Notes: a model not told the origin generated them from the letters alone. A stretch of 55,159 nucleotides of DNA from Macrostomum lignano (GCA_002269645.1 NIVC01003255.1:1-55159); one strand, 5' to 3'. Counted from the stretch's first letter, positions 1 through 53,980 are shown. Program-made: numbers and translations.

Positions 1-3000
1 AAGTTGAAAGAATGCATCTGTCCATTAAACTATCGTGACTTTCAAATGCAGCACATGGGCCATCTGATGCAGAGAAATGTTCGATTCGATCCCGATCCCA
101 GGGTGAAGGGATTCATTCCCGACACCTGGCAAAGAGAACTGCTAGACGTGGTTGACAGGCGCGAGTCGGCCGTTATTGTTGCTCCAACATCGTCCGGTAA
201 AACGTTCTGCTCTTACTACTGCATGAAAAAGGTTCTGGAGATGAGCGACGAGGCTGTCGCTGTTTATGTAGCGCCAACCAAAGCTTTAGTGAATCAGGTT
301 CAGGCTTCCATTAGTGCCAAGTTTTCTAAGCCAAATCTGACTCCCGGCATGGAGCTATGCGGAGTATTTACTCGAGACTATAATCACAAAGCAACTAGCT
401 GTCAGATTTTGGTGACAGTGCCGCAGTGCCTTGAACTGCTACTGCTGAGTCCCAGGCGTCAAGGCTGGGCTAGCCGCATTCGCTATGTGATCTTCGACGA
501 AGTTCACTGCATCGGCACCGGGATTGGGGGTATTGTCTGGGAATACTTGCTCTGCCTAATCCGGTGTCCGTTTCTTGCCCTATCGGCGACTATCTCTAAC
601 AAAGACTATTTTCACGACTGGCTGCAGACCATAAAGCAGTTTGTTCAGGTTCAAGACTCGACTCTTCTGAAGCAATCGCAGCCGATGCAGCCTAAGCATA
701 AGAAACAGCAGCGACAGAAAGGTGTCGCTCTTGTTGCTGTAGAAGGTTACAAAGTGAATCTGGTGACCTACTCTGAGCGCTATTCAGACATTCGCACTTC
801 TGTTTATCTTATCTGCCAAGAGTGGCTGTGTAGCTGAAGTTAATCCGTGCGCTTTTCTGAGCGACAAACTATTGCGAATTAACGGATTTCCTCGGAATTT
901 GAAGCTGTCACCGAAGGAATCTACGGAGGTGTGGTCAGCCGCTTTGAAATGCTTCGCCGACGATCCAGCTGCTGTTAAAGCTCTTCAGAAATTTAAACCG
1001 GAATCGTTTTTTGGCAACAAGCCTATTACTAGGTAATAATTCATGAGCAAGAACGTTTTTGCCTTGAGTCTACCACCCAGTAGGACAACTAAGTGGGGCG
1101 TATAGTGGGCGGTGTGCGCCTTCGCGACCGCCTGTGAGGGCCTATTAGACTATGTCGGACTTAACACAAACATATCAAAAGCAGACTTTTGTATTACTGG
1201 AGTATAAGACAATGTTTAAGTGCTTCTGATAATTCAATGACCTTATGTCGTACTTGTAAGAATTCGCCATTTCTACTCCATTTAATGATAAATTTAACGT
1301 TATTTTGACCTAGAATTTAGGGCGTTGTCAATTTTAAAATATTTCTCATCTGCTAAATCGCTTTGATTTTAAAACAGGACGCAATTTCGGGAATTGGAAG
1401 TCGACCTAAAAAGGACTGTCTCTGAGCTGCTTCGTCAGAGTTCGCAGGCAAAGTCTACCCAGCTACTTACTACAATTCAGCTGAATGATGACCAGCAGAA
1501 TGTAACTCAACAATTTGAGTTTCTATCCGACGTTGATATTATTAGCGCATTTCCCGATCTAATTGATCGGCTTCATTCCCAGGGTCGCTTACCAGCTTTG
1601 GTTTTTATGAACGATCGTAAAGGCATTGAAAAGCTTGCTGCGTCGCTTGTTGATCGAGCTAATGAAAGGATTAAGCAAGCTGTCGATCCGAATCTGCTAG
1701 AGCGCATGGAGAAAGCTCGCAAAGCGATGGCCATCGCCCACAAGCGCAATCGTGACAAAGATGATTCGGACGATGAAAATCCGGTCGATGCCGCCGAACG
1801 GGAATCCTACTACAGACATCGGCTAGAACTGCGCAGCAAAATTCAGGCCTGCGCCTATTTTAAACCGCAGGCCGTACAAGAATCTTTTCTTAAGGAAGTA
1901 CTGAAGCCGTTAAATGAGAATGTGACGAATATGATAGAATTTGGCGTTTGCTATCACCATGCCGGTTGTTCTGCAAAGCACCGACAAGCTGTTGAGATGC
2001 TGTTCCGCAACGGTCATTTGCAGGTTAGTTTAGGCTGTTTGCTTATTTTTTCAGCTTGATTGATCCATGGCTCTGAGTGCAAGCTAGCACTGTACATGTA
2101 TGTAAGTTTAGCTTTATAGTGTCAACATATAGAGGTAGCTTAACTAAAAAATCTAGACGTAAATCAAATCAAAAATAATTCGGGAGCCCAGAATTAGAAT
2201 AATAATTTTTGCTTCGATCTGCACATTTAGCCTTTTGATTTGATTACTCAATCGATGCGGTGTAAAAAAACTAAGCTGTTTTTACGTGGCCGTGTTGACA
2301 AAATATCATTCCACTTGAATTTTTAGTTTTAATTAGTAGACATAAAACGCATAAAAACTTACGAAGCGTTGGATCGACCAAAAAAGAAGCATGACAATCT
2401 CTGACTCTCGATCAAGTGTGCCCGGCAATGCACTCCTAACCCTCCCAGCCGCGTGTCGGCGTCAACACCCCCATTCTGTCTGCGTCAAACCCCCCTCCCA
2501 GTTGCACCGACCCCACTGTCTGTATAAGCCAACAGATTTTAGCTGGCTGCGCCCCAGTGCGCCCCCTCGCTCGCCCTGCGATTGGCTGGCGGCCCAGCCA
2601 ATCGGTTTGTGTACTCTCCCCTTCCAATCGCGACCCCGGCGGGCTTTGTAACTTTTAAGACTCGTAATTTTGGCTAGCTGGGCCTGGGGTAGCGATACGA
2701 TACCCCAGGGTAGCGATACGATACCCCAGGGTAGCGATACGATACCCCAGGGTAGCGATACGATACCCCAGGGTAGCGATACGATACCCCAGGGTAGCGA
2801 TACGATACCCCAGGGTAGCGATACGATACCCCAGGGCTTAACCAGCTAGCGTAAATATAAATGTATGCAGGAGCGGCGGTAGGGGAGGCCATCCTTTCGT
2901 GTCGATCTAGACGCAGCTACAAGCTCTATTACAACCAAAACCGAACTTACTCAGAAGCCAGTCTTTACTCAGAACTTTCGCCAGAAGTTGAGAGAAGCCA

Positions 3001-6000
3001 CCCCTACCGCCGCCATCGCTGTTGCGTGTGAAGATAAAGAGAGTGACTCGCGTGTCTTTCTCATTCGAAGGACTGGTTTGGTTTAATTTGTGCGGTAGGG
3101 ACAAGCTGATCAAGTCTCCTGGCGCGATCCCACGCTCAGAGTCCGAAGTCAGTCCGGCCAGTTGACTGACGCCATCTCTGGGCTCGTCCGTTGAGATAAC
3201 TAGAGTTGCGATCTGGCCTATATCACAACACTCGTGCCGTGCCGTGACTCTGAGCTGGCTGCAGCACCAGCTCAGAGAACTGTCCAGTGTGGTCGTTGCA
3301 TGTTTCGAGATCACCCACACGACCCAGCAATGCAGAAACTCTATAGTTTGCAATTACTGCAACCGGCCCGGTCACAAACAGGCCAGGTGTTTCAAACTGC
3401 AAAGAGACCAGCAGCAGACGGGAAACGGTCAGGTGACCTGGAGGCAGGGCCATCCAGGCACCCACCCGAATTAGCAGTAGAGGCCCAACCCAGCGCACCG
3501 AGCCAACCCGCACAAGGTACAGAACTTGTTTTGTCGATGTGATATTTGAAAGCAGAACAAGTAGTATTGCATGCTTGCTAGATTCCGGCTGAAGTATCTC
3601 CCTGCTAAGTGAAGCCGCGTGGAAGAGGAACTCGAACCGAGCCGGTTGAAGCCAAGCTACATAGGAAAGAGTATTCAAGTTGCAAATGGCGATGTCAAAG
3701 ATGTGCTGGGGGAGTGCGTTGGGGAATTTTCCATTGGCTCGCATAGATTTCGTCAACACCTTCGTCGTCGTCTCACACATACTGCACCGTTGCATCCTTA
3801 ATGCAGATTTTTTCCGATCCCAATCAGCCACGTTAGATTTTGCTAACTATCAGATCGTCACTTCGAAAGGAACTTTTTCTTTTTGTATGTCTTCTGAGTG
3901 ACCCCTTCTCTGCCGGATAGTCATTTCAAAATCGGAACCAGTTCCTGCAAATCGGTCTCAAATCATTCGAGCTAAGCTGAGTCGGAGAGGAGTGAAGGAA
4001 TTTCGGTTTTTAGGAATAGCAGAGACCCACTCCCAGACTGAAGGCCACGTGATGCTAGCTAGGTCAGTTGTGCCCTCTGCTGACGGTTCCGTCCCTCTCA
4101 AGATCACCAATGTGTCGGTAGAACCTGTAGTCCTGACAAAAGGAAAGCAGATTAGCTGGTTCTCGCCCATCCATGACAGCCAACCAAATCTTGATGAAGA
4201 ACCCAAGGCACAAGTTAAGCAGTTCTCTCTCGACAGACTGGGATCCTGTAGAGCATCTGGGCAGTTGTGACTCGCCGGACTTGTCCGAGGACCAGCAGGT
4301 GTCGTTCATAAAGTTGAACCGTCAGAACAGAGACGTCTTTGCCAAGGACTATAGCGAGCTGGGTTCAACTGACCAGGCAATGCATACCATAGACCCCGGG
4401 GACGCCAGGCCAACTAGAGAACCACCACGCCGCATCCCGCCGCACATTAGGCCAGAAATCGATGAAGAAATCGACAGGCTAATAGATTTCGGTAGGAGTG
4501 TCAATCCTCGTGGGTCAGCTCAGTCATGCCTGTACGGAAGAAGGACGGATCCATCATGCTGTGCCTGGATTATCGCCGACTAAATAAAGTAAACAGTCTT
4601 GACCCATTTCCACCGCCGCGAATGGATGAAACTTTAGAGGCGCTTGCAGGAAATGCTATTTTTTCAACTCTAGACTTGGCTTCAGGCTATCACCAGTGCC
4701 CGCTAGATCCAAAATATCAACTTGCGATTTGTGAGTTTCGGTCTAAGAAATGCCCCGGCGACTTTCGTCAAGCTGATAAACCTTGTCATGGCTGGTCTGA
4801 CATGGAGAGAGTGTCTTGAACACTTGAACAATTGTAATATTTGACAGAGGAGTAAAAATGAAGTACAAAACTGGGTACACAAGTTTGGGTGAAAGGCGTG
4901 GAACATATCAAAACAGCTGTCCTGTCCGGTTATTGAGCGAGCTAAAAAAGTTAAAGTTGACGGCTAACACCCCACATGGCAAGCTGATTGTTCAGAGTAG
5001 GTTATTAGGCCTTAATGTGCATAGCGTCTAATAAGCTAAGTTTGTTATCGTTCTTACAAAATTCTATAGTCAATCATTTCGTGTGGTTCAGTGTCACAGC
5101 AGCTCTTGCAGGTGAGCAAATGTTCATTAATGACAGAGTTTTTTAGTCAATGTTCTCTAATCCTCGTGTACATGTGTCGTTTGGTCTTTCCTATATAGGA
5201 AATGCTCTGGTCATCAGAGCAATTAAATTTGTAAACAAAACCTGCAGCGAGAGGTCGGGGCACACTGGATTTCTGATTTGATCTAAACTTAGCGATCTTT
5301 TCGGTGCGAAAGACAACAGGAATTTCAGCTTTGAGGTTTTTACGGAATAACTTTTTGATCTTTTTTAAAACTCAATAGAGCAGATCGCTGAAAGTTTCTT
5401 TACCCGATTCGGTCGGCCAATCAAAAATAATCTTGGTGTCATCTTTTATTTCGTGCAGCCAGTGATTCACTTAAGAGTCTCACCGCCCCGTGCAGGTGGT
5501 CACAGCAACCGCCACCCTGGCTCTGGGCGTTCACATGCCCTGTAAAACTGTCGTATTCGCTAGCGACGACAAGTTTTTGGATGCGCTCAACTATCACCAG
5601 ATGGCCGGTCGGTCTGGTCGACGCGGCTTCGACAACATCGGTAACATTGTGTTCTACGGCGTGCCCGCCTCCAAGATTGCTCACCTGATCCAAGCCGACC
5701 TGCCAGAACTGAAGGGCGGCTTTCCGCTTACCTGCGCTTTCGTTCTCAGACTGTTGCTTCTGACTGGGAATGCCACAGATCCCGAGGTGGCCCACAATCA
5801 AGCGGCTACGGTTTTGGAGCATCCGTTTGCTGCGCATCAGAGGCCGGATATGATGCAGCAATTACGATTATTCTTTCTGTTTAGTGCGGAGTTTCTGTAC
5901 AGGCAGGATCTTATTAATGAGTTGGGCGCTCCGCTGGTGAGTTTCATAGTGTTACTAGTGTTGTACGAATGGCCACCCAGCTTTTTTTCAAGTTGCATAC

Positions 6001-7734
6001 CGTTTTATTTGAAGTATGAATAATATATGCAATTATTGCAATTCTTAAGGTTTGTGCGCTAGAGTCACTTTAGAACCACTGAGTTCCGTCAAAAGGAATC
6101 TGCGTCAATTTGCATGTATCAATTAGAATCGCATTTAGAATTTACAGTTCTGTTTAGTCTACTTAAATAGAAAGTTAAGCGCTATCACGACTCTTGGATG
6201 ACTTTCGTAACTCAGCAGTCGCCTCTCCGTAGCATTACAGTCGTTTGAGTCTTTAAAAAATCACAAGTCGCTAGAGTCACTAAAGAGTTGTTTGCAATGA
6301 CTAGCGATTCTTGTCACGGCAACATTTTAAACGGGTATACCATTCGGCCATTCTCCAGGACCTGGCCGGCCTAGTGTGCCACATGGGCTACCTGCAGCCT
6401 GGCAACTTCGTGCTCACCTATCTGCTACGAACTCCCGCTCTGCGCCAGCTGTGCGAGCCAGCCAGCAATCAGCTGCCGCCAATTCACTACGAATTATATT
6501 GCGTCGGCTGTCAGACTGATGAACCGATAGTTGGTCAGAGATTCAAGTGCACCAAGTGCTGGTCTGACTACAGCCTGTGCGCCAGCTGCTACTCCGGCCG
6601 CCCTAACCACAACCGGGGCCGGCAGCAGCACACGGCCAACGATTTTGAGCTTCAATTGCCGCCGTTGCGAGTGCAATTCTCCGACAAAACGTTGAGAAAA
6701 TTGGTTCGAATCCTCTGCCACCTGTTCACTAAGGTGGACTTGCCCCGGTATCTGGTTAAAAGGACGGCTGATGGAACTCTGCATTATGTCCGGTAAAAAT
6801 CCTGCAGTTTTGCGCTAAAATCATAGGTTCTGATTGGCAAACCACTGACAAAAAAGTAATGATACTGTTAGGAACTTTATCTTAAACATCTATTTCACCT
6901 ACTCTCGCCCCGCGCTACGACCTCTGGCTCATTTCCATACTCAAACATTGATTTTAGGGCTTGTTCTCGAAAATTAGCCTTGGGGTTGACGAGCGATTCA
7001 CACCCATGAGGACTAGTCCCCCCAAGGCCGCTTGCCGCTGTACACCCTATGTGAGCGTGTGTGTGAGTGCGTGCCTGAGTACACTACCATCTCTACTGAT
7101 TTCTAGGCCAACCGAGAACTCCAAGGTGCTTCTGAAGCCGCTGCCAAACGATATTGAATCGGCAGTCCGTGACTACAACTCGGCCACAGCTGTGACTTAC
7201 ACCAACTACCTGCGCTGCACTGCCGATTCTGGCCTGCTGAAATTCTCTACCGCTCTGCCGTTCAGCCAATCCGCTCCCATTGTGCCTAGCAGCGATCGCC
7301 AGCTCCAAGTGTCAGCGGTGGCTCCTCTGGCTCGGCTATCCTGGGGTCCCACCACTCCTGACTCTAACGAAGCACTTCGTCGCGTGCTATTGAACAGCGG
7401 TAATAACAGCTCGGAACAGTTGCGTCGCCTGCTGCTATTGGAGATCGTCACCGATGCCAATTTGATTCCGCTGCTGCCTACGAAGCGACTGTTAAACGCT
7501 TACGCTTTGGACTTTTTCACTCACTGCAGTCGGGCTTCGATTGTTCGCGATAATGGAATTCGGGAGGGCGACTTATTCGACTTGCTCAAAGACTTCTCAC
7601 TGGCCTGCAGGGCCGTGGCGAATTTGCTGACTCAGCTGGCCGCTGATCCCGACGATCCGGTGGTCTGCGCCTTCAAACAGGTGGCATTCGAGTACAAAGC
7701 GCGCTTTCGTCGAGCCTTCCCTAACGCGCGTTGA
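1..7734 (+). CDS. DDX60: DDX60/DDX60L-like Ski2-family DEVH-box RNA helicase, 5'-partial; exons approx. <1..1032, 1378..2023, 5496..5936, 6359..6792, 7107..7734
   Basis: Motif I APTSSGKT (181-204), DEVH (496-507), SAT (583-591), motif V VVTATATLALGVHMPCK, motif VI QMAGRSGRRG; DDX60-type segments FIPDTWQRELLDVVD, NPCAFL..GFP..L.LSP.ES, LAGLVCHM, SKVLLKPLP. GT-AG sites give phase-compatible joins (TR|TQF, LQ|VVT, PL|DLA, VR|PTE). One frameshift near 805-815. Confidence 0.9.
2392..3230 (+). promoter_or_regulatory. Putative 5' LTR (CCAAT boxes, tandem array, TATA-like TATAAAT ~2856-2862)
   Basis: Non-coding GC-rich block directly upstream of a PBS-like site, ending in CA near 3227-3230; no second copy to confirm the ends. 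Confidence 0.5.
2687..2833. repeat. Perfect tandem repeat, 7 x 21 bp (GGGTAGCGATACGATACCCCA), each unit self-complementary (GGGTA..TACCC)
   Basis: Seven identical units counted directly; no spacers. Confidence 0.97.
3239..3250 (+). other. Primer-binding site complementary to the tRNA-His 3' end
   Basis: GTGCCGTGACTC matches the recalled tRNA-His PBS consensus TGGTGCCGTGACTCGG over 12 nt, just after the putative LTR end. Confidence 0.6.
6057..6337. repeat. Dispersed repeat, copy A (non-autonomous element with subterminal hairpin)
   Basis: Shares CGCCTCTCCG.AGCATTACAG.CGTTT, CGCTAGAGTCACT and CTTGTCACG..AACATTT..AACGGG blocks, in the same order, with ~47800-48110. Confidence 0.75.
6485..6646 (+). 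other. ZZ-type zinc finger domain within the DDX60-like helicase
   Basis: HYELYCVGCQTDEPIVGQRFKCTKCWSDYSLCASCY..H......H matches the ZZ pattern CxxC-(I.G.R.KC)xxC-DY.LCxxC-H; it is in frame between DDX60-like segments of the same exon. Confidence 0.85.
7051..7085. repeat. Short interspersed repeat shared with 16585-16617 (opposite strand)
   Basis: GTGAGCGTGTGTGTGAGTGCGTGCCTGAGTACA vs reverse complement GTGAGCGTGTGTATGAGTGCTTGCCTGCGTACA (3 mismatches in 33 nt). Confidence 0.6.
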
Positions 7735-11778: not shown

Positions 11779-13890
11779 TTAGCCCATCGAGCAGTAGTCC
11801 TGCAGCTGCTGGAACTCCAGTCCGGTGAGGCTACGACTGCTCATACCGTAGCAGCGGATTGTGCCCTTGAAACTCCTATCATCTTCCAGGCTATAGCCTA
11901 GTCGCAGACACCCGAAGCGACTCGCAGCAGCGCTCCCAATGCTTCCATTTTGCGTTGGCTCCGCGTACGTGATGCTTCCGTTAAAATAAAATTTCACACT
12001 TTCGGCGTTGGCGGCGAACGAATAGCCAACTGAGATTAAACTGGTTGAGTCATCGTTAGTAAACAGGTTGTAAGCTGACCAACGTTGATACTGGAAATAT
12101 CCGTTCATCCAATGAAAATAGGCGTACAATGAACGGCTATATTTTGCCCAAGTACTAGCCGATTGGGTTCCGTCGCATTGTTGAATCCGGTGGTAGAAAT
12201 TGTAGCTGAAAGTTTAGTCACTCGTCAGATTTTTTCTATGAACAATTGTTACACCATAACCCCTCCTCACTCTCTGCCCTAAGTCCCCTATCTTATCCCT
12301 CCCTGCCCCAGCCCCCATGTCACTCTGCCCCAGTCCCCCAACTCACCTCTTGCCCTAGTCCCCTTCCTCCCTCCCTGCCCCAGTACCACACCCTACTTCT
12401 TGTCCTAGTCCCCAACCTCACTTCTTGCTCCAGTCCCCCTCCTCACTCCCTGCCCAGCCCCCACCTCACTCTCTACACCAGCCCCACCTCACTCCCTCCC
12501 CCAGCCCCCAACCTCACTCCCTACCACATTCCCCCTCCTCACTCCCTGTCCCAGTCCCCTACCTCCCTGCCCCAGTCCCCTACATGTACCTCCCTCCCTG
12601 CCCCAGTACCCCACTCTACTTCATGTCCTAGTCCCCCTCCTCACTCCCCTGCCCCAGTCCCCCTCCTCACTCCCCTGCCCCAGTCCCCCTCCTCACTCCC
12701 TGCCCAGCCCCCTCCTCACTCCCTGCCCCAGTCCCCCTCCTCACTCCCTGCCCAGCCCCCTCCTCACTCCCTGCCCCAGTCCCCCTCCCCACTCCCTGCC
12801 CAGCCCCCTCCTCACTCTCTGCACCAGCCCCCCACCTCACTCCCTGCCTCAGTCCTCCAGATCCTTATTCTCTTCTCCACTTATCTATACACTTTATCTG
12901 TATCCTAATTGATCTCTAGCCAATTAAAAGATTGTCAAGAAAGTGTTGAAATATTGTCTCACCCGCTCGTCATGTTATGCCTAGCTAGCATGTAGAATGA
13001 ATAATTTCTATTAAAGTCCAAATCGTGCTCAAGGCCAGGCGTCTTAGCAATCAGATAGGAATCATTGTGCCCCATCAGCTGGGCACCGTCGGTCCCAAGG
13101 TTCACGTTGCGAGCGGTGAGGCAATACTGCCTTGGATTCACCTCGTTCAGTAAGCCGCTGTGCGTGAATCGGTAAAACATTTTCATCTGCAGCTGGCTCA
13201 GTAGACCAGCGTTTTCTGAAAAATAGGCAAGGTACGTTACGACAATGACTCTATCCTTAACGTGGGAGAAGTGTAGAGTCAGAGTATCGTCTGGGTTTCT
13301 TTCGCTGACCAAGAAGCGACACTGCCCTGCCCACATCAAATCTTGTATAACTTTAGTCTTCTCCATGTTTAAATTGACACACAAACAACGGATAAACGAG
13401 TTTCTGAGCATCTTTTCACACAAGTTGGCTTGCTGAAACAACCTTGTCTTGAAGTTTTGTGTGAATCAAGAATATTGATTGGACCAAACTGCAAGAGTCA
13501 GTGTCGCTTTTTTGCAGAGAAAATAGTGTTCCTTGGCAGATTCATTCGTGCTAGCCACTTACTAGAAGCACCCGTATGCTGATAAGTGTCGCAGCTTCCA
13601 GACGTCCATTGTTCCACTGTCGAGCAGGAGTCGCCAGTGTAGCACAGCCGAGTGCCCGGATCAAAGTAAAAGGCGTCACAAAGCGGCTGCAGGCTGCAGT
13701 GCACCGAGCACTCAGCGTTGCTTCCAACGTTGGACGCCGCAATCACTGCAGCGTCGGTGGGGCAGAGCGAAGTGCGTTGGAATGTCAGACTGTCCGTTTG
13801 GAAGCCGAGAGCAGAAGACAGCCGGCACCAGCATGTCATTAGCATGGCAATCGGTAGACATAGCTTTGTAATTCGTGGGTAGCGATGCAT
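11779..13890 (-). CDS. Secreted protein with signal peptide, PAN/apple domain and LamG/ConA(pentraxin)-like domain; exons approx. 13890..13563, 13341..12963, 12136..11779
   Basis: Hydrophobic N-terminus (LCLPIAMLMTCWCRLSSALG); PAN pattern ECSVHCSLQPLCDAFYFDPGTRLC; C-terminal SFKGTIRCYGMSSRSLTGLEFQQL resembles the LamG_3 end (F.G.I......R.L...E...L); donors GTAAGT (13562) and GTGAG (12962) with phase-compatible acceptors. The exon 2 acceptor and the start codon are uncertain. Confidence 0.65.
12260..12860. repeat. C-rich degenerate minisatellite (CCCCTCCTCACTCCCTGCCCAG-like, ~23-25 bp units) in an intron
   Basis: Strongly strand-asymmetric pyrimidine repeat visible directly. Confidence 0.9.
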
Positions 13891-15116: not shown

Positions 15117-16333
15117 ATGCAGCAGGTGCAACAGTCAGCCATGATGGTTTCTCACGTAAGTACGAGTATCGCTCTTATCTTATATTTTTACCGGTAGATT
15201 TGCTAATAAATCTATAAAAATAAATCTCATCTTATTTGGATGTCTTCGGAGCAGAATTTAATCAAACGCAATAGTAAACAAAGTTTCTGCTATATACGCT
15301 TGTACGACCTTGAAAATAACCAAACTGAACCTTTGAACGCTATGTACACAAATGAGTTCAGCGATTTGGATGGACAGATGTACTATAAATCTTTAGAATC
15401 TGTGTAAAAATATACGCTCGCAATAACTGAGAGAAGCACCATGACACACTTGAACGGACACTAAGACTCAAAAACACACTTGGAACCATGATAAAAAGCA
15501 TTAAAGACAACGGCCCTAAAGTAAGGTAATGTTTGCTTCTCTCTAACCCTGCTCAATAGAACTCGCAGCAGCAGCAGCCTCAACTGGCCCAGTGGCAGGC
15601 GGATCGAATCTGCACAGCTGCAGCTTCCGGTAGCCCCATCGCCTTGACGGCCGCCCTAACTGCCGTTGGCGTCACAGTCGACGTAGCCACTTCGGTAGAT
15701 CGGTCCGTCGACGACGCCGCTTACGCTGCAAACATCGTCAACTGTCGCGACTCAGTGCGCTGCTTGACGCCGCTTCACTGTGCGGCCACCGCAGCCGCTG
15801 CCGCCGCTGCCGGACCTGAAAGCGACCAGGTGGACGCAGGCGCGGGAGACTGCGCCGCTTCGCTCCTCGTGTTGGGCGCAAATCCCAATGCCAGAGACGG
15901 CCACGGTTGCACACCGTTGCACTACGCGGCTCGCTACGCCTCGCCAAAGGTTTGCCAATGCCTGCTGACGTGCCGGTCAACTAGGATCGATTTGCGCAAC
16001 GCATGGGGCAGGACAGCACTCATGTTCGCCGCTTGGGGCGGCGATGAGAGTGGAGCGGTTAGCGGAGCTGGTGACAGCGAGATTAAGCGGCTGGTGATTG
16101 CTCGATCTCTGCTCAGGGCCGGAGCCAACGTCGACATCCGCGACTCTCGCGGCAGAACGGCGCTGATGTGGTCGGCGTTGAACGCCAAAGTCGCTCTGCT
16201 CCGGCTGCTGCTGAACTCTGGCGCCGATTGGCGTCGGAGAAATTTTGACGGGCTGACGGCGGCTCAGCTGGCTCAGCGTGAGGGTCACGTCGAGGTGGCG
16301 CAACTTCTAGCTGCAGTTGCAGACAATGCGTAA
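15117..16333 (+). CDS. Ankyrin-repeat protein, ~271 aa; exons 15117..15155 and 15560..16333
   Basis: Ankyrin motifs TPLHCAA, GCTPLHYAA, GRTALMFAA, GRTALMWSA, GLTAAQLA; small first exon MQQVQQSAMMVSH with GTAAGT donor joins in phase 0 to an acceptor at 15559. Confidence 0.85.
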
Positions 16334-49000: not shown

Positions 49001-50379
49001 ACTTGTACACTACTGTGACAAGAAATGTACCGTTTTTGATGCTAAAATTTGAACAATGCGAGTCCAGACCTAATTGGCTAAAAAATTAGCTGACATTAAG
49101 GTTGTCACAGAACTAAACACAAAAACTCACTCAAGTTCCTAGCCCTGCGAATAAGCCGGGTGGCCCACACCAGAGGCAGCCAGTACTCCGGGTCGTAAGA
49201 ATGCTTGCTCTCGCTTGACAATTGAGCTGATCGGCCGAATGCCAGCACCTCATTGTCCGTAACCAGCTGGCCAAAATATTTCTGCACTTTAATGTCCGAG
49301 TTGACCATTTTTAGACGCCGTTTCCACGTGTGCTTGAACTTCTTAGTTTTGCTTTTCGGTTCGAAATAACCAAATCGTTCTCTGATGTGAAGCGACACCC
49401 GAGCCATCATGAGGATCCAGGCCAGGTTCAGGTACCTCAGCACGGTGATTCGCAACTTTCTGGCCAGATCGCTCCTACTGGCTTTCGGGCTGTCCAGGAG
49501 GGCCTGACAGTAGAATGAAGGAGTCTGCACCCATGGTATGGACATGCAGACGGACCACCAGCTGTTGAAGGGTGTTCAATCAAGCGGATATTGTTATATT
49601 TTAATTATTGAGGGTATGTGAACTTACGCGCTAAGGAACCTTTCATTTTATATATACTTTATTCTACGGAGCGATCGGGATTACTCTCATAAAACCCTTT
49701 AGAGCATGCGACCTTTGTGTATTTCTTATAACTTTTTTTACCATTTCAACTGGGTCACTGGGGCATGCAGTTTGGCTAATTAAGCATTGTGAATAGCATA
49801 AATCACTTGGAATATAAAAATATGTATATTTATGCACAACTTATTCATGAAGCGGTCATGTGACCCTTCAGTGCACAAAAATGTTTTAAGTGTCAAGTAA
49901 AACAAAATATGCAGTATCTTCTTTTTTATATTGACCTTAAAAGCTGTCAAGGTTCGATCCAATATTACAGTAGGTTATGAGATCTAGAATTAACATAAAA
50001 ATAAAACAATTCAAAGCACAAAAGCTGTTTCAGATATCTCCTACATTCATCGATATTACGAGAATATTTATTTAAAAATTAAATATAAAGCAACTCACCG
50101 TTCCACAACGGACGATACAAAGAAGCCGAGCATGAACGAAAGCGGTACGGATGTGCTGACAGTTTTCAACCAGCTCACTGTGACCTCGAATGTAGCCTTC
50201 ATCTTGGCGTCATTGTACAGGATTAGCTGGTACAGCATCGCCAGTGATACGTACAAAGCGACGAACACCAGGAAGTCAACCCAAAGCAACTGCCAAACAC
50301 TGCCGGACCAGCGGAACAGCAACTTGATGAAGAATAGCCGATCTTTCGTATAGATCTTGGCTGCGTAACTCACTGCCAT
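46009..50379 (-). CDS. BEST: Bestrophin-family anion channel, ~566 aa; exons 50379..50099, 49561..49131, 48679..48374, 47423..47251, 46518..46009
   Basis: MAVSY...KLLFRWSGSVWQLLW, VPLSFMLGFFVSSVVERWW, IPLVYTQV, GWFKIG..LLNPMGKDEAD; exon lengths sum to 1701 nt with consistent phases and canonical GT-AG sites. Confidence 0.93.
46755..46925. repeat. Polypurine (GA-rich) low-complexity tract in the last bestrophin intron
   Basis: Almost exclusively G/A for ~170 nt. Confidence 0.9.
47800..48110. repeat. Dispersed repeat, copy B, in a bestrophin intron
   Basis: Homologous to 6057-6337; perfect 11-bp inverted repeat TCGCTAGAGTC / GACTCTAGCGA at 48036-48079. Confidence 0.75.
48850..48957. repeat. 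Tandem repeat, ~5 x 21 bp (AAGTGTCAGTCCCAGAACCCA)
   Basis: Directly visible with minor variants; lies in a bestrophin intron. Confidence 0.9.
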
Positions 50380-51409: not shown

Positions 51410-52135
51410 ATATATAGCGCCTTCGGCGCCAAAATGAGTGCCTGCGGCGGTAAAATGAGTGTCTGCGGCGCTAAAATGAGTGCCTGCGGCGGTAAAATGA
51501 GTGCCTGTGGCGCTGAAATGAGTGCCTGTGGGGTAAAGGGAGTGCCTGCGGCGCTAAAATGAGTGCCTGCGGCGCTAAAATGAGTTGTCTGCGGCGCTAA
51601 AATGAGTGCCTGCGGCGCCAAAATGAGTGTCTGCAGCGCTAAAATGAGTTGTCTGCGGCGCTAAAATGAGTGTCTGCGGCGCTAAAATGAGTGCCTGCGG
51701 CGCCAAAATGAGTGCCTGTGGGGGTAAAATGAGTGTCTGCGGCGCTGAAATGAGTGCCTGCGGCGCCAAAATGAGTGCCTGCGGCGCTAAAATGAGTGCC
51801 TGCGGCGCTAAAATGAGTTGTCTGCGGCGCTAAAATGAGTGCCTGCGGCGCCAAAATGAGTGTCTGCGGCGCTGAAATGAGTGCCTGCGGCGCCAAAATG
51901 AGTGCCTGTGGGGGTAAAATGAGTGACTGTGGGGGTAAAATGAGTGTCTGCGGCGCTAAAATGAGTGCCTGCGGCGCCAAAATGAGTGCCTGTGGGGGTA
52001 AAATGAGTGTCTGCGGCGCTAAAATGAGTGCCTGCGGCGCCAAAATGAGTGCCTGCGGCGCCAAAATGAGTGCCTGCGGCGCTAAAATGAGTGCCTGCGG
52101 CGCTAAAATGAGTGCCTGCGGCGCTAAAATGAGCG
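51410..52135. repeat. Minisatellite, roughly 34 x 21 bp (GCCTGCGGCGCTAAAATGAGT), with occasional 23-bp variants
   Basis: Directly visible; preceded by a G/C-run-rich segment (51285-51365) resembling a non-autonomous DNA element end. Confidence 0.95.
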
Positions 52136-53980
52136 CTGACAACACGATTCTCAAAATTCTAAAAATTTAGGACTCGTATTTTTTGAGGACCTTTCAGCTT
52201 ATTATTTAAACGATGTAATTTTTAAAGGTGGAATCCTATATTTAATTGATTTCCTAATGGCATGTTGGATTTTTCAAGAGCATTGAAGTAGCACTTTCCT
52301 CGTCAAATGAACCCTCAGTTCTCTAACACCTGAGCAGCTCAAACCAGTGACTATAAATGGATTTACGACTCAAAAAGCTCTCTTCAGTCGATTTATCCTA
52401 TCAAATTAAGCCCTCAAGTACGCATAATTGTCACAGAGCTTTTCTCGCTGAAGGCAGGGATATGTAGAGCTGTAGGAAATCCTACCAAATATGAAATCAT
52501 GTCAATCTACTGTCGAAATTTTGAAAGCTTTGCCAACCATATATATTTCACAAATCCATCCCAATCGAAAACTATAGCTACTCTCGTATGCTTGCTTAGC
52601 TATTCTTCTTTACTAATCAAGCACGATTTGAGCCAGCATGCGCAAGCTAGTGCTGCCACAGTGCCTGCTTGCCTCACTGCCAGTCGGCTTGCTGTTCGTC
52701 TGCGCTACCGACATCAGCAGCAATTACAAAGCCATCGAAGCCGTCCTGTGCGTGGCTAATGAGTTTGTCGAGACGCATCCGGCAGTCCAGAGCGCCTTTT
52801 GTTTTAAGCAAAAGCACATCTTACTCGATTGACAAAAAGCAGATGGATAATTCTTGCAATAACTGGAATTAAGCTAGAAATTTCGCCTCGCCATCAATGC
52901 ATGGTAAGTTTCAAGCAGTGTGATTCTAAAAGCAGCTTATATACTCGTAGCTTTGAGGGACTGCAAGCTAAGCTGCTGTGGCTCAACAGCACCTTCAACC
53001 AAGGAGCTTAGCATAATTGGCATGCAATTATAGCTGCCCTCAAAACAGCTATTATAATTTCTTACGAAAAACACGTGAACACTTAGCTAATTCTCATGTT
53101 GATTGCTTTGCCCATCACACCGTGTCCGTGACAAAGTTGCACTTCTTGAAGCTGTCGAGAGGCCAAGCTTGCCGGCCCTAAAGAGAGGCCACACTCTTTA
53201 GAGAGGAAACTCATCAACCATACAGTATGTGTTTCTGGGTCAAAATATACAGCTAGCTACACCACTAAATTGCTTTTCTATCTTTGCGTCGCTTATCGTA
53301 AACTCACGTGTATGTTGCATTTTATTTTCGCTTGGCACTCTGCATTGCTGACCCCAAAGTCCTAGTAGAAGTTTGGCCAGAAGAAATAGCCAATTAGTGC
53401 GACTCAAGCTGAACCAGGCCATGGCTCAGGACCCCTGCCTGCGACCAACTGAGGCAAATGCATAAAAACACTCAAGTGACCATGAAGTGAGCGTGCAACT
53501 ATAATGCACTAGCTATATGTTATTGATGAAGACAATTAATGGCGTTTGCTCGTAAACAGCCTAACTATGAGTATAAGCTATTCGCGCCGTAATATGCAAT
53601 TTTACCTACTGCTCCTTTGAGCACATGCTTTTTTACTCCAGAAACGGTTTGCTGCTAATATTTTTTGTAAACTTATTTCAGGTGTCTGTTTTTCCGCTGA
53701 GTGACTCGATGCCAGTGACTTGTGGCTTTTTACAGGTTTTATGAGAGCGCTTAAACAAGAATTGTTTCGATTCGTTAAGTTGAAATTTTCTATAACATGC
53801 ATTGTGGAAATATAAAAAAATATGATAGCCATGTCAACTTTTGAGTTTCTATCGAATTTCACAGAAAGTAGACTTGTACTCGTAATATACTTGTAATATA
53901 ATATACTTGAAGTAGCAATCCAAAATCTAAAAATCTACTAAGGGGTCGAAGCTATATTGAAACATATCTTCTTCTTAAAG

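Follow-up and report, generated by a model that had tools for sequence, protein, structure and literature searches.

DDX60 Helicases, ZZ Domains and the Macrostomum lignano Locus

Vertebrate DDX60 and DDX60L are interferon-induced Ski2-like DExH helicases whose cellular role is disputed, the proposals being a RIG-I co-factor, an IRES-selective translation inhibitor or a ribosome-associated factor. The sole solved structure of the family that we found is that of kDDX60 from the trypanosome 43S pre-initiation complex (PDB 7ase/7ask). Accessory modules grafted on the winged-helix/helical-bundle part are found in the helicases Mtr4 (the arch/KOW) and Ski2 (the insertion domain), where the inserted element consists of a stalk plus a beta-barrel. 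ZZ domains generally bind a partner either at its free N-terminus or through a short extended peptide, and the known ZZ readers, including p62/SQSTM1, HERC2, PRT1, KCMF1, p300 and ZZZ3, reside in ubiquitin-ligase, autophagy or chromatin proteins.

We analyzed a 55,159-nucleotide stretch of DNA from the free-living flatworm Macrostomum lignano (GCA_002269645.1, NIVC01003255.1:1-55159; hereafter the window), in which a DDX60-family gene carries a ZZ zinc finger. The M. lignano protein shares with vertebrate DDX60 and DDX60L the PIN-like DDX60 N-terminal domain, the DExH core and Helicase_C, followed by a part that aligns to the C-terminal region of the family; where this part aligns with alpaca DDX60, the identity is 37-47%. 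Flatworms are not known to have an interferon system, so the regulation of DDX60 must differ there. The trypanosome kDDX60 aligns across the insertion site but lacks the insert. The window ZZ has the same fold and zinc-ligand pattern as the ZZ readers named above, but differs from them in that V and S take the place of two of the three pocket acids, the gap between the two His is six rather than the usual three, and the host is a helicase. In concept the insertion resembles those of Mtr4 and Ski2, although the grafted module is a ZZ domain. The profile alignment to Mtr4 covers RecA2 only; the ZZ site may lie ~35 residues downstream of the arch site, which we take as a lead only.

DDX60 with an inserted ZZ belongs to a known helicase family but has a rare domain architecture that appears to be undescribed. 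With moderate confidence, we favor the reading that the ZZ domain was inserted once into a loop of a DDX60 helicase and acts there as an adaptor for a partner other than an Arg N-degron.

The Host Gene Encodes a DDX60-Family Helicase

The host is a multi-exon gene on the + strand at window positions 1-7734, with its 3' two-thirds contained and its start upstream of the window. Exon borders were derived from canonical splice sites together with tblastn of the closest database protein, the 1513-residue M. lignano protein UniRef100_A0A1I8FWF1 (P0044). The features are as follows.

1-1032, + strand: exon, DDX60-like helicase RecA1 with Walker A (APTSSGKT) and DExH motif II (FDEVH); Pfam DEAD 1.2e-22
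811-817, + strand: frame break, 7 nt against a single codon (Pro867) in the UniProt protein (+4 nt)
1378-2023, + strand: exon, linker and beginning of RecA2 (Helicase_C); 98.6% identical to P0044 residues 938-1155 by tblastn
2024-5495, + strand: intron 3, with a 21-bp tandem repeat and decayed retroelement remnants
5496-5936, + strand: exon, end of RecA2 (motif VI QMAGRSGRRG) and start of the winged-helix/C-terminal DDX60 region; splice sites, 99% identity to P0044 and alignment to DDX60-like proteins
6359-6792, + strand: ZZ exon, DDX60 N-flank helix DLAGLVCHMGYLQPGNFVLTYLLRTPALRQLC, ZZ insert and DDX60 C-flank helix TLRKLVRILCHLF
6461-6676, + strand: segment extra to other DDX60-like proteins, ~72 aa (net insertion ~65 aa)
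6485-6646, + strand: ZZ zinc-finger core, CVGC and CASC (candidate zinc site 1), CTKC with His (PNH) and His (QQH) (candidate zinc site 2)
7107-7734, + strand: last exon, DDX60-family C-terminal helical region (NAYALDFF..., LKDFSL...); splice acceptor and alignment, stop TGA at 7732-7734

The Walker A motif and FDEVH are directly readable in the translation of the first of these exons, which ends in a donor (ag/gtaata) after nt 1032, and the exon at 1378-2023 is bordered by the acceptor aaacag/G and the donor CAG/gttagt. Helicase_C, split across two exons, scores 39.6 bits in the full-length database protein, whose domains are PIN-like_DDX60, DEAD, Helicase_C and ZZ; the part of the gene encoding the PIN-like domain (PF23002, 101 bits) lies upstream of the window. 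A0A1I8FWF1 was recovered by an exhaustive HMMER search with 100% identity over the ZZ exon, and spans exactly the derived exon junctions. This entry is an unreviewed, automatic gene model, and the inclusion of the ZZ exon in the transcript rests on that model.

Among named proteins, those closest to the C-terminal 500 residues are annotated as "probable ATP-dependent RNA helicase DDX60" in alpaca and in the sea urchin Lytechinus, the closest solved relative by sequence is kDDX60 (PDB 7ase), and the top Foldseek matches of the C-terminal AlphaFold model are MTR4 and SKI2. Together with the domain content, these matches identify the M. lignano gene as a Ski2-like DExH helicase of the DDX60 family. 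The C-terminal region aligns with ~40 proteins annotated with PF26076 (WHD_DDX60), with E down to 1e-112; a local Pfam search returned no PF26076 match, even for the proteins that carry this annotation. A match to DUF7117 was weak (E=0.004, below the cut-off) and was dismissed.

The reading frame of the window copy is broken within the first exon. Residues 599-866 of the database protein align by tblastn to nt 7-810 in frame 1. Past the break at 811-817, residues 868-939 align to nt 818-1033 in frame 2, and a stop at 835-837 ends frame 1. The break may be a frameshift in a dead allele or paralogue of a duplicated genome, or an assembly indel, and the genomic copy that carries it could be a dead copy.

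A Complete ZZ Finger Lies in Frame Within One DDX60 Exon

The earlier note had placed a ZZ zinc finger at 6485-6646, in frame between DDX60-like C-terminal segments and within a single exon. Each of these points held. The translation of 6485-6646 (+ strand) reads IHYELYCVGCQTDEPIVGQRFKCTKCWSDYSLCASCYSGRPNHNRGRQQHTANDF, and Pfam ZZ (PF00569) matches the exon ORF at residues 59-99, beginning at nt 6485, with 25.9 bits (E=9e-6), the gathering cut-off being 21.4; in the M. lignano protein at full length the score is 22.6 bits, likewise above the cut-off. The exon itself, 6359-6792, is a single uninterrupted reading frame with the borders ...ctccag/GAC and CCG/gtaaaa, and conserved helices of DDX60-like proteins are matched at both of its ends, by the first 34 residues (DLAGLVCHMGYLQPGNFVLTYLLRTPALRQLCEP) and by the last ~38 (FSDKTLRKLVRILCHLF...).

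When PDB sequences were searched with phmmer, the matches were almost exclusively ZZ domains, led by HERC2 (1e-5), PRT1 (7e-5) and p62 (8e-5) and followed by MIB1 and KCMF1, with BIG also present. In an alignment with 34 ZZ relatives from the exhaustive protein search, CVGC, CTKC and CASC fall in invariant Cys columns. Two His lie at +7 and +14 past the last Cys of the window ZZ, and their conservation suggests that both belong to the second zinc site; the six-residue gap between them occurs in 3/31 relatives, the usual gap being three. AlphaFold2 assigns the ZZ a pLDDT of 86-93 within the 500-residue C-terminal region and of 83 alone, and the top 50 Foldseek matches of the isolated model in the PDB are all ZZ-domain-containing (HERC2 with TM 0.75-0.83, p62 with 0.77, and PRT1). 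The segment is thus a complete finger of the ZZ type, predicted to form a two-zinc cross-brace.

Outside the helicases, the strongest matches to the finger (P0045-P0193) are proteins with 2-8 tandem ZZ domains, including an NBR1-like protein with seven. A kinase with UBA and ZZ domains has a finger reading CAGC...GYSLC, which resembles the CVGC...DYSLC of the window.

The Insertion Is Rare and Probably Old

We surveyed the window protein and 44 DDX60-like proteins from vertebrates, echinoderms, fungi and metagenomes, 43 of which span the site, for the distance between the "HYxEPxN" and "LCHLF" helices. This distance is 41-51 residues in 40 homologues and 112-116 in three insert carriers, the window protein having 116. 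No ZZ insert occurs in alpaca DDX60, sea urchin DDX60 or the ~38 other DDX60-like proteins compared, and the expectation that vertebrate DDX60 lacks a ZZ is borne out by the alpaca protein.

The two other carriers, whose insertion site is exactly identical to that of the window protein, are a 592-aa fragment from an ENA metagenome (ERZ26222911; P0001) and a 1725-aa protein present on a scaffold from a TARA ocean metagenome as well as in a Logan assembly (ERR6349624; P0055), the latter with a PIN-like DDX60 match (PF23002) of 118 bits. In a neighbor-joining tree built only from columns outside the insert, the three carriers group together with moderate bootstrap support (141/200, 70%) and adjoin metazoan DDX60. 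Since they form a clade even with the insert excluded, a single old insertion is suggested, most likely one that took place in the ancestor of a poorly sampled animal lineage, as far as these sequences tell.

The count of three carriers is a lower bound. Among the best 150 of 381 matches to the ZZ exon in a search of 1.84 billion representatives, DDX60 flanks were present only in the M. lignano protein itself and in P0055, and P0001, which scores 79 bits against the exon, was absent from the matches listed. A word-indexed search, when queried with the alignment, gave the 43 proteins already in hand and, when queried with the ZZ exon alone, gave nothing; it missed both the M. lignano protein and P0055. 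A scan of JGI metagenomes yielded three DDX60-like loci, and the insert was absent from both loci read in translation. No publication was found that links DDX60 to a ZZ domain or to Macrostomum, and the papers and databases searched yielded no functional data on an invertebrate member of the family. In the sequences and literature searched, the combination is accordingly neither widespread nor described, with at least three carriers, although the M. lignano protein itself is already public in UniProt.

P0055 is encoded (L002 133-5310) by one unbroken ORF of 5.2 kb, on a contig that looks genomic. Its Logan counterpart, P0194 (L007 61-5316), has a different N-terminus, and this difference suggests a 5' intron. 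Outside the divergent N-terminus the two versions differ by 14 synonymous and 7 non-synonymous codons; within the ZZ there is a single difference, too few for dN/dS.

The carriers differ in how much of the finger they keep. P0055 retains all six Cys and both His, at +7 and +14 as in the window ZZ, and shares with the latter an [ND][DE]F-x-L after the second His. P0001 retains the first zinc site only (CVLC...CQEC); neither the second CxxC nor either His is left in it. The simplest reading of these sequences is that the ZZ is maintained in two carrier lineages and half-decayed in that of P0001, and because P0001 has lost these ligands the domain may be dispensable.

The loss of the second zinc site in P0001 also bears on the alternative that the finger is vestigial or purely structural, a ligand-free insert tolerated in a surface loop and slowly decaying. 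The variation of the canonical acidic pocket among the three carriers and the upstream frame break of the window copy are in line with it. The window protein and P0055, however, are only ~38% identical over the exon, and yet neither has lost any of the six Cys, either His or the Arg that corresponds to R139 of p62; the length of the segment is constant at 112-116 aa in 3/3 carriers, and the C-terminal return strand ([ND][DE]F..P.L..[FY][ST][DE]) is kept even in P0001. We regard a vestigial finger as unlikely, though it is the alternative that survives best.

The Pocket and Its Candidate Ligands

The groove of p62 that receives an N-terminal Arg is formed by D129, N132, D147 and D149, and mutation of any one of D129, D147 and D149 abolishes Nt-Arg binding (PMC6197226). 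The residues at the corresponding columns, in the order window, P0055, P0001, are as follows.

p62 D129 column: V, T, V; Asp in 27/34 ZZ relatives
p62 D147 column: D, E, Q; Asp in 27/34 ZZ relatives
p62 D149 column: S, C, D; Asp in 31/34 ZZ relatives
p62 R139 column: R, R, M; Arg in 34/34 ZZ relatives

The window ZZ thus has V, D and S in place of the acidic D129, D147 and D149 of p62. The earlier note had read the motifs CVGC and DYSLC as the loss of two acidic residues relative to p62 and had expected a different ligand. The substitutions are as it described (D129 to Val, D149 to Ser), and the two acids concerned are those that in p62 hold the alpha-amino and guanidinium groups of the N-terminal Arg. 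A ligand unlike that of p62 is a fair inference, because p62 needs each of D129, D147 and D149 for Nt-Arg binding (PMC6197226). The candidate ligands are then a hydrophobic or small N-terminus, an internal peptide, and RNA or the ribosome.

The ZZ, ~65 residues long and coded inside one exon, sits in the short loop that joins two conserved helices directly past the winged-helix region. In the explanation that we favor, the finger would fold as an independent, surface-exposed module on the C-terminal accessory region of the helicase and, by analogy with other ZZ domains, would serve as a protein-binding adaptor. Its partner is probably not an Arg N-degron, because the pocket acids are replaced (Val/Ser in the window; Thr/Cys and Val/Asp in the relatives) and the finger is neutral to basic in net charge; more likely partners would offer an N-terminus that is hydrophobic or small, or else an internal peptide. 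As a consequence, the helicase may be recruited to the partner, or the partner onto the RNA or ribosome substrate of the helicase. That the ZZ couples RNA sensing to a degradation or signaling pathway, as had also been proposed, is speculation. The ZZ might recognize a particular protein N-terminus, such as one newly exposed when a viral polyprotein is cleaved or one on a nascent or ribosome-associated chain, and direct RNA remodeling or decay; we hold this version to be doubtful, and if true it would represent a new way for a helicase to be coupled to the recognition of N-termini, in animals not known to have interferon signaling.

The charge of the finger is also relevant to a second alternative, in which its ligand is not a protein N-terminus but RNA or the ribosome, so that it extends the substrate surface of the helicase. 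The net charge is +1, +4 and +5 in the three carriers, as against a mean of -0.2 and a range of -10 to +4 in the 34 relatives, and the loop from the last Cys to the His ligands is basic in 3/3 carriers (GRPNHNRGRQQH, HGHPKNRHEK and KRNKPDRFSGIK). Moreover, the family is ribosome-associated, kDDX60 being part of the trypanosome 43S complex (PDB 7ase), and human DDX60 is reported to act on type II IRES translation (PMC9724679). Yet the solved ZZ domains recovered here are described as binders of peptides or N-termini, none as a binder of nucleic acid, and the charge of the finger falls inside the range of ordinary ZZ domains, and we consider an RNA or ribosome contact quite improbable.

Least likely of the ligand alternatives is a canonical, p62-like reader of Arg/N-degrons that would tie the helicase to autophagy or the N-degron pathway. 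The fold is that of a ZZ, p62 is among the best structural matches, and the equivalents of p62 D147 and R139 are kept in the window and in P0055, the former as E in P0055. In p62, however, a change of D129 or of D149 alone abolishes Nt-Arg binding (PMC6197226), and an acid at the D129 position is found in 0/3 insert carriers. Since Val and Ser occupy the D129 and D149 positions and no carrier has an acid at the former, N-terminal-arginine binding in the manner of p62 is unlikely on the residues present, and we give this alternative very little weight.

An apparent fusion produced by assembly or annotation can be set aside almost entirely: the assembly copy does contain at least one frame break and the UniProt model was predicted automatically, but the ZZ and both DDX60 flanks lie within one unbroken ORF of one exon, and the same architecture recurs in independent ENA, TARA and Logan assemblies.

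At present the DDX60-ZZ protein is a domain-architecture curiosity restricted to very few known sequences, and any function is putative. It nevertheless offers a clean case of domain insertion in a helicase surface loop without a new exon, and a helicase lineage that has acquired a dedicated, putatively peptide-binding module is a handle for finding the physical partner of DDX60. RNAi and transgenesis both work in M. lignano, which makes it a tractable model.

Other Features of the Window

Intron 3 holds, on the + strand and in broken frames, a gag-like CCHC knuckle at ~3244-3474 (CNYCNRPGHKQARC) and a reverse-transcriptase fragment at ~4526-4819, which matches Pfam RVT_1 at 2.7e-4, below its cut-off. 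The 21-bp tandem repeat of this intron, at ~2670-2890, reads GSDTIPQ seven times in one frame. Neither the retroelement fragments nor the repeat need affect the gene.

Elsewhere in the window, a proline-rich repetitive ORF at 12246-12908 (+ strand) and a low-complexity repeat with QALILAP-type units at 51639-52170 (both strands) are probably non-coding simple repeats. The neighbors of the helicase gene include a weak PAN-domain ORF at 13498-13890 (- strand), an ankyrin-repeat ORF at 15644-16333 (+ strand) and a bestrophin exon at 49105-49545 (- strand). A very large multi-exon gene occupies ~17800-40900 on the - strand, with laminin EGF repeats, many fibronectin type III domains and laminin G, an architecture that is usherin-like.
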